Position numbers and translations under genes: made by a program | In this document: one piece after another, positions 6,464 to 52,197 of the stretch | How positions within the stretch are numbered: the stretch's first letter is position 1 | Layout of the letters: every line of letters starts with the position of its first letter | Assembly: GCA_038496445.1 (NCBI GenBank) | Contig: JALMLS010000185.1 | Coordinates: 1-64,000, forward strand | Length of the DNA stretch: 64,000 bases | Origin: Trichosphaerium sp. ATCC 40318 | Lineage: Eukaryota > Protista > Tubulinea | Reading direction: 5' to 3' | Notes under the pieces: generated by a model | Database searches by the model: none | Told to the model about the DNA's origin: nothing | The model's input: the letters and a program-made list of their open reading frames with translations, nothing else

Positions 6464-7026
6464 ATGTGTGTTAAAAGCAGTATACATGACAAAAAACGAC
6501 AAAAAAAGGTGCTGTGATTAACTTGTGTTTTGCTTTCTACAAAAGAGTTCTACAACCCCATCAAACTACTTTTTCGAGTTTTAATCCATTGTGTGACTGA
6601 CTAGCCGGTATTAGCTGCAAAGGATATAAAAAACTCAAAACGAGACTAGTACATTCCTCTTCGCTAATTACATTTCTTGATCACGTGTTTTAGTGATTAT
6701 GAATACGCGAAAGCATGGGTTCAAGAGCTTGATAGATATGCACCAAAGGATATCCAAGCAATACTTGTTGGAACAAAGAGTGATCTCATTGAAGAACATG
6801 CTGTTGATACTGATGTTGCCCAGGTATTAACAATAGTTCCATTTTTATTGGTTTGTTAATTAAATGTAGGAATTTGCTGATGAACATGAGATGGAGTTTA
6901 TTGAAATATCTTCCAAAGATGCAATCAATGGTATGTTTACATCAACACATACAAGCGTATAACTTTATTGTTGTAGTTACAGAAGCATTTATTCTGTTAA
7001 CAGCAATGATAGTTAAATCAAAGTGA
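6464..7026 (+). pseudogene. Rab1-derived GTPase copy with in-frame deletion of G1-G3
   Basis: Same exon layout as the paralogues. DYEY joins directly to [27 protein letters not shown]; ends [25 protein letters not shown]; starts MCVKSS instead of MGxKSS. Confidence 0.75.
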
Positions 7027-8110: not shown

Positions 8111-9061
8111 TTATTCATCATTCTCGAGTATTGCGGCTGATAGCAAAATAAACATTTCATTTACTATGACAACAAAGTTAGCCATTTTGCTTACAGACCT
8201 ACACGTACCATTGATTGCATCTTTGGAAGATATTTCAATAAACTCCATCTCATGTTCATCAGCAAATTCCTAAATTTAATTAACAAACAAAAATGAAACT
8301 ATTGTTATACCTGGGCAATATCAGTATCAACAGCATGTTCTTCAATGAGATCACTCTTTGTTCCAACAAGTATTGCTTGGATTTCATATCTTTCAACTTC
8401 TTGTGCCCACCTTTTGATATTTTGAAACGTCTCTAAGTTTGTAGTATCATACATTATCAAAGCACCATTGGAACGTCGAAAGTACCTGCCATATCTTGCG
8501 TATTTTTCATCACCTATTAAAACGAAATAATTTAATGTAATAATCTCAATCAACACTCACAAAACTGATCCCAAATTTGTAGCTTGATGGTTTTCTCAAA
8601 TACTTGTATGTATTTCTCTCTCTACATCTTGTTAACATGTGCATTTTAAAGTACCAAAAGTGTCATACAAAGTTAACACTGACTGTAGGTATGAATGGTT
8701 CTGTATATGTATCATCAACAAATCTACGTATAGCACTGCTTTTTCCAACACCAGGATCTCCAAAGGTAATTATTTTGTATTCATAACCACTAAAAACACG
8801 TGGTCAAGAAAAATCGGAAAGAGCCAAAGAGGAATGTACTAGTCTTGTATGGGCGTTTCAACTTTCAAGGCTAATATGAGTGTATCAGTTACTCACACTA
8901 GGCGATTACAATTTGTAAAAAAAACTTTTCGAGTGTTTGTAAAGGGGTAGTGGAAGTCTTTTGTAGAGCTCAGAGCAAAATATACAGAGAAATCAAGTTT
9001 AACAGTTCTCACCTTTTTTTCTTCGTTTGTTGTTACTCGCTTTGCTGCTTTTACCACCCAT
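8111..9061 (-). CDS. Divergent Rab1-derived GTPase, N-terminal MGGKSSK, no C-terminal Cys
   Basis: YKIITFGDPGVGKSSAIRRFVDDTYTEPFIPTVSVNF / KTIKLQIWDQ / VGTKSDL / EISSKDAIN / ...AILENDE*. Confidence 0.8.
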
Positions 9062-16752: not shown

Positions 16753-18151
16753 TTAATAATCAAGTCGCTTTATTATCATAGATGCTAACAGAATAAAGGT
16801 TTCTGTAACTGCAACAATAAAGTTAGACACTTGTATGTGTTGATGTAAACATACCATTGATTGCATCTTTGGAAGATATTTCAAAAAACTCCATCTTGTA
16901 TGCACTAGCAAATTCCTATTGTATTTTTAACACTTTAAGGAAATGTTAGGATGAATGTATTACCTGGGCAATATCAGTATCAACAGCACGTTCTTCAATG
17001 AGATCACTTTTTGTTCCAACAAGTATTGTTTGGGCATGCTGTTCTCCACTTCTTTCAGCCTCTAGACGCCACCGTTTTGCATCTTCAAAGCTCTGTTGGT
17101 TTGTAATATCATACAATATTAAAACCCCTCCAGCACCTCTATAAGGATTGGTACACAGTGTTCGGAATCTCTCCCTACCTGATAAAGACAAAACCATGTT
17201 AAAACAGAATCAACATTCAAAAAGGAGACTGGTCCACATCACCACAAAGTGTGAAAAGCTCACCAGAGGTATCCCAAATTTGTAGTTTAACAGTCTTATC
17301 ATACACTTTGATTGTTTTTACTTTCTACACACTATAAATTATATGGCGCTGTTTTAGCCTCAAAGGAGGTGTTTCTATTGTATGGCCTTGATTAGAGGTG
17401 GTCGCTAAAAGGCTACAAACTTGAAACGGCTAACCGACTAAGAAAAATAAGGGAAAACAAAATCCATTTTTTTGCTTGATACTAGGCATTATACCTATGT
17501 ATCGAACATAAAACGAATTTCAAAGCCATAAAGAGCATGTAGAACTTTAAAAAAACCATGTGTACCATGGTACAACACCAACAAAATCTCACATTTTTAA
17601 AAAGTTAGCAGATTACAGATCTTGCTGCTGAGTCTCTTAGCCGTCTGTTAACCAGCTTAGCCGGGACCACGACCACCTCTTATGACATAATTTTTGTGAC
17701 ATAGTGAGTTTATGTGGTGGTAAAGAATGGATTATGTGCCTTTTGAGGCACCACGTGTATTGTAACGTACAAACTCAACACCAATTGTGGAAATGGGTGA
17801 TTCGGTAAATGTGTCATCAACGAATCTAAGTATAATACTACTTTTTCCAACACCAGAATCTCCAGCTAAAACTATTTTGAATAAATAATCACTAATAACG
17901 CATCAGTAAACGGAATGAGCCATGAGGAATGTACTAGTCTGGTTTTGGCCCGTTTGTAGCCGCTGGAACTACTATAAGCTTGTCAGTCGCTCGAATACTG
18001 TAAATAGCAGAAAAAAAGCCCGAAAAGTAGTTTGATGGTTGTTGTAGTCCTCTGTAAGTTGGAAAGCAAAATATGCAGTAATCAAGTTAAACAGTCAAGT
18101 ACCTTTTTCTTGTTGTTTGGCGTGACTCTTTTTACTGCTTTTAACACCCAT
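16753..18151 (-). CDS. Divergent Rab1-derived GTPase, N-terminal MGVKSSK, no C-terminal Cys
   Basis: [42 protein letters not shown] / [19 protein letters not shown] / VGTKSDL / EISSK / ...IIKRLDY*; exon 2 boundary uncertain. Confidence 0.85.
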
Positions 18152-43205: not shown

Positions 43206-44392
43206 ATGCAGGCTCAGAAATTAAAAATACTCGTTATTGGACCGGCTGGAACGGGAAAGACAAGTATTATATCAAGATATGTCAGAGACGGTTTCTCCAA
43301 AGGCTATAAAACAACGGTAAGCTTTACAATTTCCAAAAAGACGAAAAAAAAATAATTGTAAGACATTTCTTACTACTCCCTTTTTTACGCTTGTCACGTG
43401 ATTGTCACGTTTCGTTATAAGCCTTTTACATTGTTTTATCCTTTCAAAACGTTATTTGTTCCAATTGACGCTTATAACAAGATTGGCGTTGATTACGCGG
43501 TTAAATCTGTCATGCTTTGTAATACAGAGGTTACGCTTCAGTTGTGGGTGAGTATGATCAATCTCTGTGGGAAGTCATTAAATTTCGCTAGGATATTGCT
43601 GGTCAGGAGCGTTTTGAATCAATGATGCGTGTAAGCATAGTCACGTGCGACTACGTAACTGTGACGTGGTCGCTTTTTTTTTTACTGAAAAACAATTGAA
43701 GTTTACTCTTTTCTTTGTTCACTTAGGTATATTACAATAGAGCTGCTGGTGCTGTGGTTGTCACAGATGTCACAAATGCTTCAACACTTGCTTCAGCCCG
43801 AAAGTGGAAAGCAGATCTCGATACAAAACTGGTTAATCCAGCAACACAAGCTGGTGTTCCGAGTATTTTATTACTAAATAAGGTACAACTTTTCGTTCTT
43901 TATTCTTAACTTTCTTTGCACAATACGCAACGAGTAAACCATTTTTTACGACACATCCAATATTAGAAAACATATTCTTGATGAGTTTTGATTTGTACGA
44001 AAAGGCACAAACAACGGAAGCTTCACGTGTTTTTTGGGTTTTTTGAAAAAAGCGACATAATTAGTTTTCGTTGTTGATTGTGTTGACTCTTTGTGTTTGA
44101 GGTTGATCTACTGGATGATAAGAAACCAGATAGTGTAACAGCAACTCTTATGGAAGATTTTTGTCTCAATAACGGCTTCTCTAAGTGGTTTGCAACTTCA
44201 GCAAAGGATAATATAAATATAAGGGAATCTTTAGAGTTTCTAGCAAAGGAAATCTTAATGCATCAAGGTTTCAATACAAAGAAAAATACAAAAGATGACG
44301 ATACGATACATATAGAAAAAAATACAAGTGATTTTGAAACAAGTGATAATAACACGAGCGGATGCTGTGGATCAAAAGGAGATGTAAAATAA
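43206..44392 (+). CDS. Rab32/38/29-like GTPase
   Basis: GPAGTGKTS, TT/IGVDY, subfamily-diagnostic W/DIAGQERF, KWKADLD, LLNK/VDL, WFATSAKDNINI; ends GCCGSKGDVK*. Confidence 0.9.
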
Positions 44393-50829: not shown

Positions 50830-52197
50830 ATGGGTGCTAAAAGCAGTAAACACAGTCGCGACAAACAACAAGAAAAAGGTACTTGACTGTTTAACTTGAT
50901 AACTGCATTTTGCTCCAACTTTACAACAGAGGATTACAACAACCCATCAAACTACTTTTCGGGCTGCCCTTGTGCTAGTTATAGTACTTGAGCGACTGAT
51001 ACGCTTGTATTAGGTTCAACGGCTACAAACAGGCCAAAACCAGACTAGTACATTCCTCACTGGCTCATTCCGTTTACTGATGCGCTACTAGTGACTACTT
51101 ATTCAAAATAAATACAGTTGGAGATTTTGGTGTTGGGAAAAGTAGTATTATACTTAGATTCGTTGATGATACATTTACAGAATCACTCATCTCCACAATT
51201 GGTGTTGATTTTGTACGTTACACGTGCCTCAAAGGCACATACTCCATTCTTTACCACAGCTGTGCTATATCACAAAAATTATGCCATCAGAGGTGGTCGT
51301 GGTCCCGGTTTCGCCCGGGTAATAGACGGCTAAGAAACTCAGCAACAAAATCTGCAATCGGCTAAACTGTTTAAAAATGTGAGATTTTGTTGGTGTTGTA
51401 CCATGGTACATATGCTTTTTTTAAGTTATACATGCTCTCTGTTGCTTTGGAATTCGTTGAATGTTCGATACATAGGTACAATGCCTAGTATCAAGCAAAA
51501 AAATTCAAAAAATGGATTGAGTTATTTCCCTTATTTTCCTTAGCCGGTTAGCCGTGTAAGTTTATAGCCGATTAGAGACCACCTCTAATCGGGGCCATAA
51601 AATAGAAACACCTTCTTTGAGACTAAAACAGCACCATATAATTTATAGTGTAGAAAGTAAAAACAATCAAAGTGTATGATAAGACTGTTAAACTACAAAT
51701 TTGGGATACCTCTGGTGAGCTTTTTTTCTTGAAGTTGTTTTGGTGTTTTACAAGTACTTAGTTTTTATTAGGTAAGGACAGATTCCGAACAGTTTGTGCC
51801 AGTCCCTATAGAGGTGCTGCAGGGGCTTTAATATTGTACGATACTACAGACCAACAGAGTTTTGAAAATGCAAAACTGTGGCGGCAAGAGGTTGAAAGAT
51901 ATACATCAGAGGATATCCAAACAATACTTGTTGGGACAAAAAGTGATCTCATTGAAGAACGTGCTGTTGATACTGATATTGCCCAGGTAATACATTAATC
52001 CTAACATTTCCTTAAAGTGTTAAAAATACAATAGGAATTTGCTAGTGCATACAAGATGGAGTTTTTTGAAATATCTTCCAAAGATGCAATCAATGGTATG
52101 TTTACATCAACACATACAATTGTCTAACTTGATTGTTGTAGTTAAAGAAACCTTTATTCTGTTAGCATCTATGATAATAAAGCAACTTGATTATTAA
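50830..52197 (+). CDS. Divergent Rab1-derived GTPase, N-terminal MGAKSSK, no C-terminal Cys
   Basis: [43 protein letters not shown] / [19 protein letters not shown] / VGTKSDL / EISSKDAIN / [18 protein letters not shown]. Confidence 0.85.

Follow-up and report, generated by a model that had tools for sequence, protein, structure and literature searches.

Part of what defines a Rab GTPase is its C-terminal geranylgeranyl anchor, together with the cycle of Rab escort protein (REP) and GDP dissociation inhibitor (GDI) that is built on it, and a Rab without a C-terminal Cys cannot enter the REP/RabGGTase/GDI cycle. In the literature that we searched, the N-acylated Rabs named are of the Rab5 type only, namely plant ARA6/RABF1 and alveolate/Plasmodium Rab5b (PMC3398913, PMC3912013, PMC5869587). 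The same literature holds no N-acylated Rab1, with Porfirio-Sousa et al. 2022 (Amoebozoa Rabs) and Elias et al. 2012 lying outside its reach. The paper describing the Trichosphaerium genome (70.87 Mb, GC 37.7%) makes no mention of Rabs (PMC10521059). Here we analyze a stretch of 64,000 nt from Trichosphaerium sp. ATCC 40318 (contig JALMLS010000185.1; the whole stretch is called the window), which carries three paralogous Rab-like genes with a putative N-myristoylation signal. These genes are probably intact members of a lineage-specific family of small GTPases that is represented by at least 30 first exons and undergoes birth-and-death turnover. The family was probably derived from an older Rab1 paralogue of Tubulinea, found in this genome at G000:C81, that had already swapped its anchor; it would be an offshoot of that gene and not its orthologue.

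Like ARA6 and PfRab5b, the proteins of the window family combine a Rab fold with an MG acylation signal on an N-terminal extension, have no C-terminal Cys and are predicted not to depend on REP, RabGGTase or GDI. The putative parent, which we call MGC-type, also has the matching Gly2-Cys3 dual-acylation motif. Unlike ARA6 and PfRab5b, the window family is Rab1-like rather than Rab5-like and has a separate origin. It has no Cys3, and its predicted anchor is myristate plus a basic patch instead of myristate plus palmitate. Furthermore, it occupies at least 30 loci, and many of its members are without catalytic residues.

All coordinates are positions in the window; family loci elsewhere carry L-numbers and relatives P-numbers. 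The window DNA is AT-rich (GC about 36%), and its introns are short and bounded by GT-AG. The gene models were obtained with a script that looked in each locus for exons in the phases of copy 3. Copy 3 occupies positions 50830-52197 of the forward strand, and copies 2 and 1 lie on the reverse strand (Table 1). Each copy consists of seven exons, every intron is GT-AG, and the open reading frames (ORFs) are unbroken, encoding 198, 198 and 192 residues in copies 3, 2 and 1, respectively. In the same order, the N-termini read MGAKSSK, MGVKSSK and MGGKSSK, each followed by a basic stretch (copy 1 begins MGGKSSKASNNKRRKK), and the G3 motif reads WDTSGK, WDTSGR and WDQFCD, the last of which has lost the Gly of DxxG as well. 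The P-loop is GDSGVGKS in copy 2 and GDPGVGKS in copy 1, whereas G4 is GTKSD in all three copies, and G5 is SSK. The proteins end in ..MIIKQLDY, ..MIIKRLDY and ..AAILENDE, with no Cys among the last 10 residues. The stop codon falls 17-20 residues past the SSKDAIN motif, just after helix 5, and both the CC/CxC geranylgeranylation motif and the hypervariable tail of Rab1 are absent. The models agree with the initial annotation of this DNA as to where the three copies lie, how they start, where they end without a Cys, and how their G3 and G4 motifs read.

A small second exon is part of every model. Exon 1 (49 nt, phase 1) and the P-loop exon, whose frame calls for two upstream nucleotides, cannot be joined in frame in any copy (in copy 3 such a join would imply a 213-nt intron), and therefore a small exon between them is required. 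It is present in all paralogues, with an acceptor reading ..ATTAG/ or ..TGTAG/ (a slash marks the splice site) and a donor made up of a D or E codon followed by TA/GTAC. Its length is 25, 31, 34, 40 or 46 nt depending on the paralogue (31-34 nt in the window copies), which is always 1 mod 3, and it contains no stops. Since the donor splits a Tyr codon, splicing creates the Rab1-like sequence (D/E)YDYLFK. A 4-nt micro-exon ACTA, spliced at a nearer AG, would also restore the frame. We prefer the 25-46-nt exon for its conserved acceptor and for its homology to exon 2 of the G000:C81 gene. An internal acceptor that deletes beta1 was rejected: it is in frame, but its positions are non-homologous between copies.

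Database searches with these genes were run exon by exon, and the joined models were used for alignment, for the ratio of nonsynonymous to synonymous substitution rates (dN/dS), for the tree and for local BLAST. The Pfam Ras family (PF00071) was matched with E=6.7e-18, 1.4e-9 and 0.0073 by individual exons; Rab-type motifs are present, and the best PDB matches of the exons are all Rabs. In phmmer searches of the PDB, exon 5 scored 74-75 bits against Rab1A/B and 71 bits against Ypt1, with Sec4/Rab3/Rab8 next at about 54 bits, and the P-loop exon scored 55 bits against Rab1, 46 against Rab35 and 40 against Rab8. Rab1 leads the best 60 PDB matches of the exons, and no Rab5 is among them. Rab1 also dominates a representative search of 1.84 billion proteins, in which the single-domain matches are ordinary Rab1 proteins at no more than 56% identity. 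The PDB searches, with their margin of about 20 bits for exon 5, uphold the Rab1-like character of the core that had been noticed earlier. As this core is Rab1-like and not Rab5-like, the putative anchor swap is independent of that in ARA6 and PfRab5b.

The likeness to canonical Rab1/Ypt1 extends to YDYLFK, the TIGVDF of switch I and KLQIWD, and the amoeba Rab1 genomic ORF P0159 has an intron after WDTxG at the identical place. In contrast to canonical Rab1/Ypt1, the window family has a 27-residue N-terminal extension in addition to its missing tail, TKSD takes the place of NKxD, the window copies deviate from DTAGQ, and the identity is about 50-56%. TKxD is the form that G4 takes in the Rho family. 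When the whole genome was searched with P0003, a canonical prenylated Rab1, no clear locus emerged, and nothing was closer than two conserved N-acylated-type paralogues (64-66% at the exon level), both of which are described below. The ordinary Rab1 of this organism either has very small exons, is missing from the assembly or is unusually divergent.

The origin of the family is suggested by a protein class that was found with P0208, a transcript-derived protein of Flabellula baltica. P0208 starts with MG, is Cys-less and Rab1-like, begins MGSGLFRPKKKK and has GTKSD. Used as a query, it led to proteins with an MGC(G/N)xSK start, a linker some 35 residues long, WDTAGQERF, GNKCD and a Cys-less end ..AIKEKLEE. 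This MGC-type class is present in Flabellula baltica, Nolandella sp. AFSM9 and Difflugia compressa (all Tubulinea; EukProt) and in about 25 environmental clusters from the Joint Genome Institute (JGI) and Logan; apparently, it constitutes an unnamed Rab subfamily. Its orthologue in the Trichosphaerium genome, G000:C81:174887-178165 (L039), starts with MGCGNSK and ends in ..AIRDKLEE. The P-loop exon of this gene is 100% identical to that of Nolandella P0295, and its three-exon 5' model (MGCGNSKGNKSK / GLGSSALNVSGSTSKRPPAGNNKSSNPE / YDYLFK) reproduces the N-termini of the environmental relatives P0355 (MGCGGSKTNRSQPGLNVKTSGSTSDPTKRPPNTKSANPEYDYLFK) and P0333. The MGC-type gene is very conserved, with 91% identity between Trichosphaerium and environmental relatives.

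The window family and the G000:C81 gene have a common 5' layout, in which a phase-1 MG exon is followed by a linker exon ending in (D/E)-TA/GTAC and by a P-loop exon that starts from DY(L)FK; exon 2 of copy 3 resembles the linker exon of the G000:C81 gene. Both end after helix 5, have no Cys there and share the wording GVGKSS..Dx. The two differ in that the MGC-type proteins have Cys3 for palmitoylation, WDTAGQERF and GNKCD, whereas the window family is divergent, with MGxKSSK, TKSD and varying G1 and G3. The initial annotation had proposed an independent origin from Rab1. This holds insofar as the core sets the family apart from the Rab5 group, but the G000:C81 gene and its relatives in three other Tubulinea amoebae indicate that the swap did not arise in the window family itself.

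The genome contains a second conserved, N-acylated-type, Cys-less Rab1 paralogue, G000:C27:317733-320963 (L048), which starts with MGALFGKKK, has WDTAGQ and GNKTD and ends in ..KEDQDDE.

The extent of the family was determined in the whole assembly (70.3 Mb, 642 contigs). An exon-level search gave 71 Ras-like exon matches, and the pattern ATGGGNNNNAARAGYAGYAAR, which describes the MGxKSSK first exon, gave 30 matches genome-wide and none in a reversed control. Every match for which the locus was fetched is followed, within a few hundred bases, by a Rab-like P-loop exon. Hence, what had been taken for a family of three copies comprises at least 30 such first exons, and the window itself holds a truncated fourth copy. 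The count of at least 30 rests on first exons; 21 paralogues were modelled. Intron positions and phases are common to these 21, GTKSD or GTKCD is near-universal among them, and a C-terminal Cys is found in none (last 10 residues).

Some family loci are identical between contigs G000:C60, C139 and C380 (L026, L027, L031, L034 and L036), and L026 and L027 show zero differences in exons and introns. Part of the count of 30 probably represents allelic or duplicated contigs. A further peculiarity of the first exons is that KSSK is encoded by AAA AGC AGY AAA in 29 of the 30 (e.g. at 50830-50850), its synonymous sites being near-invariant even between paralogues that elsewhere are only about 50% identical. 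This could stem from codon bias, from gene conversion or from a signal near the start that acts at the nucleotide level.

According to the explanation that we favor, the MGC-type parent would already have lost the geranylgeranyl-Cys tail at its C-terminus and gained an acylation signal at its N-terminus instead. In its descendants, Gly2 of MGxKSSK, with Ser6 and Lys7 in place, would be myristoylated co-translationally by the N-myristoyltransferase (NMT), a gene for which is present in the Trichosphaerium genome. MG[A/V/G]KSSK of the window copies fits the PROSITE pattern G-{EDRKHPFYW}-x(2)-[STAGCN]-{P}, as do 22 of the 30 first exons genome-wide, and the earlier proposal that MGxxxSK matches the NMT consensus stands for the three Cys-less window copies. 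Myristate together with a basic stretch is the Src-type membrane anchor, and here the two might tether the protein to acidic membranes, with about 27 residues serving as a flexible linker. Neither prenylation by REP/RabGGTase nor extraction by GDI would be expected of a protein without a C-terminal Cys, and its membrane binding would be uncoupled from the nucleotide state.

The G domain appears to retain the residues for nucleotide binding, namely GxxxxGK[ST], the switch I Thr, the G3 Asp, TKxD and SSK, while the catalytic positions (the third P-loop residue and the Gly and Gln of switch II) vary. The third P-loop residue, which corresponds to G12 of Ras, is F, S or P in the window copies and F, S, P, I, L, M, T, G, N or R across the family. 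G3 occurs as DTSGK, DTSGR, DQFCD, DTAGT, DACCD, DTCDQ, DTCAQ, DTCGQ, EYLSP, DICGQ, DTFGQ and other variants, and WDTAGQ is intact only in the two conserved genes (L039 and L048). The position equivalent to Q61 is K, R or D in the window copies. The catalytic Gln was earlier said to be lacking, which is correct for these three copies (Lys, Arg and Cys-Asp) and for some others but does not describe the family as a whole: six modelled members keep it, four of them with the preceding Gly (L009, L010, L015 and L019) and two with the DxxG Gly lost (L006 and L008). Because the switch II Gln is replaced in the window copies, and in copy 1 the DxxG Gly too, poor intrinsic GTP hydrolysis is predicted for them, and they may be GTP-locked or may no longer switch. 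Switch II changes fastest, and partner binding could be either diversified or relaxed.

In this respect the family resembles the GTPase-deficient GTPases of the Rnd/RhoH type and the pseudoGTPases (the latter reviewed in a paper cited by PMC13393502), which have substitutions at the positions equivalent to G12 and Q61 and keep the nucleotide-binding residues. Such substitutions would predict constitutive GTP binding or a loss of switching. The window family differs from the Rnd/RhoH type in that it belongs to the Rab branch and not to Rho, and has substitutions that vary between copies instead of being fixed.

If correct, this explanation provides a second, independent case of N-acylated Rabs, this time in the Rab1 lineage. 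It would have two layers: a conserved Rab1 paralogue of several Tubulinea amoebae that is predicted to be dually acylated, and its expansion to at least 30 loci in Trichosphaerium, where the copies seem to have traded palmitoylation for a basic patch while losing catalytic residues. The copies would represent a natural series in which to study to what extent a Rab can lose its coupling to GDI and to GTP hydrolysis while selection still maintains it.

Phylogenetic relationships were analyzed with a maximum-likelihood tree of 57 rows, comprising 21 family models, the two conserved genes, 14 MG-type relatives, 9 Rab1 sequences and references of the Rab8/10/3/19/30/43/11 types; the long rows P0230 and P0004 and the canonical Rab1 of Trichosphaerium, for which no locus was found, are omitted. 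The family is monophyletic (support 95/85), as are the MGC-type clade (89/89) and canonical Rab1 (93/52). A Rab phylogeny had been suggested as a check in the initial annotation; it recovers the family as one clade and puts it at a common node (81/89) with the MGC-type clade, canonical Rab1 and the Rab8/10/3 clade.

Several observations weigh against the favored explanation. The tree gives no order among the four groups that meet at the 81/89 node. In eight of the 30 first exons, Gly2 is followed by His or Asp, both of which are barred by the PROSITE pattern. TBC-type RabGAPs (GTPase-activating proteins) supply a Gln finger in trans, and for this reason the loss of the Gln in cis need not abolish GAP-assisted hydrolysis. 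Broken loci exist: L013 (without a P-loop), L020 (exon 1 frameshifted), L022, L032 (GK[ST] damaged), L033 and the window fragment at 6680-6929. A dN/dS near 0.8 in recent duplicates fits weak or no constraint. A word search with the read-through ORF of L019, a ten-ORF profile, the representative search with exon 5 and local BLAST yielded no transcript-derived or same-organism protein with more than about 56% identity to the family, a weak negative since clusters at 50% identity could hide fragments. A 26-mer spanning the spliced junction is absent from JGI metagenome contigs. In the organism's own genome the same 26-mer matches exon-intron boundaries only, which means that there are no retrocopies. 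Transcript-level support is indirect and comes from the MGC-type proteins of other amoebae.

The most serious rival explanation, though an unlikely one, is that the three copies, like much of the family, have no function or are in decay. They would stem from a recent burst of segmental duplications that drift almost neutrally, and would simply have inherited the MG start and the missing tail from the functional MGC-type parent. The missing transcript-derived protein, the truncated and broken copies, and the loss of catalytic and DxxG residues would all be accounted for in this way. The substitution rates, which were estimated by the Nei-Gojobori method and are point estimates from small counts, speak on both sides. 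Between copies 2 and 3, dN/dS is 0.74, and the exon dS of 0.118 is close to the intron mismatch of 0.107. Other recent pairs give dN/dS of 0.6-2.1, and seven sister pairs when pooled give 0.79 overall, with 1.58 in G3/switch II, 1.47 in beta1/P-loop and 0.4-0.8 elsewhere. However, older pairs with intact ORFs give 0.3-0.5, and frames and splice sites are still intact between subfamilies at a dS of 0.4-0.6, which argues that coding capacity has been maintained. Decay is also at odds with the seven exons, which are intact together with splice sites and frames in the three window genes and in the 21 modelled loci, with the length changes of exon 2, all of which are multiples of three, and with the conservation of the nucleotide-binding motifs and of the block from beta5 through G4 and alpha4 to beta6.

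It is improbable that the swap to N-myristoylation arose inside the window family, straight from a canonical Rab1. The Rab1-like core and the difference between MGxKSSK and the MGC of the conserved paralogue are compatible with such an event, and the free tree places the family outside the MGC-type clade. Forcing the family and the MGC-type proteins into one clade costs 10.6 log-likelihood units, and the approximately unbiased (AU) test does not reject this arrangement (p=0.215). The main argument for descent from the MGC-type gene therefore comes from the structure of the genes: the three-exon 5' layout with its unusual, Tyr-splitting TA/GTAC donor is common to the family and the G000:C81 gene, the linker exons are homologous, and both proteins have an identical end after helix 5 with an acidic tail.

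There is also a slim chance that the family serves as membrane-tethered Rab1 decoys or sensors for microbial effectors that bind or modify Rab1. Intracellular bacteria of amoebae target switch II of Rab1, and a decoy function, if true, would explain the fast change of switch II and the catalytic residues (dN/dS about 1.6), the dispensability of GDI cycling and hydrolysis, and the birth-and-death turnover. Finally, it is very improbable that the MG exon is not the true start, either with a further exon upstream or with the ATGGG..AAAAGCAGYAAA block being non-coding, for although the searches gave no RNA evidence and the conservation of the block at synonymous positions could be explained by a nucleotide-level function, complete transcript-derived MGC-type ORFs begin with MG at the equivalent place, copy 3 has an in-frame stop 10 codons 5' of the exon 1 ATG, and every paralogue retains the phase-1 donor.

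Table 1. Exons and copies of the Rab1-like GTPase family in the window (a slash marks a splice site)
Feature	Position	Strand	Description
Copy 3, exon 1	50830..50878	+	49 nt, phase 1; predicted N-myristoylation site and basic patch; donor AAG/GTACTT
Copy 3, exon 2	51014..51047	+	34 nt; linker and first two nt of Tyr codon; acceptor cgcttgtattag/, donor ACTA/GTACAT
Copy 3, exon 3	51092..51212	+	(Y)...STIGVDF; beta1, P-loop, helix 1, switch I; Pfam Ras PF00071 E=1.4e-9; PDB Rab1 55 bits
Copy 3, exon 4	51654..51714	+	Interswitch and G3, plus split Gly codon
Copy 3, exon 5	51772..51986	+	(G)KDRFRT...; switch II Lys replaces catalytic Gln; G4 TKSD; Pfam Ras E=6.7e-18
Copy 3, exon 6	52035..52095	+	beta6; G5 = SSK
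Copy 3, exon 7	52142..52197	+	(V)... then stop; helix 5; no Cys, no hypervariable tail
Copy 2	16753..18151	-	Exons 18103-18151, 17935-17968, 17771-17891, 17264-17324, 16964-17178, 16855-16915, 16753-16808
Copy 1	8111..9061	-	Exons 9013-9061, 8840-8870, 8669-8789, 8561-8621, 8311-8513, 8209-8269, 8111-8163
Fourth, truncated copy	6680..6929	+	Second half of exon 5 and exon 6 alone

Some 1.2 kb separate the truncated copy from copy 1, which is on the other strand. Neither a P-loop exon nor an MG exon was found upstream of the truncated copy, and it is probably a pseudogene fragment.

Intron 3 is 441-446 nt long in copies 2 (17325-17770) and 3, as compared to 46-162 nt in the remaining paralogues. 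The additional DNA of about 300 nt (51286-51589 in copy 3) is flanked by the 13-nt inverted repeats ATCAGAGGTGGTC and GACCACCTCTAAT, and from its sequence it looks like an insertion of the miniature inverted-repeat transposable element (MITE) type. Elsewhere in the window, a weak tblastn match at 43709-43822 on the forward strand is an exon from a different Ras-like GTPase gene (..YYNRAAGAVVVTDVTNASTLASARKWKADLD).

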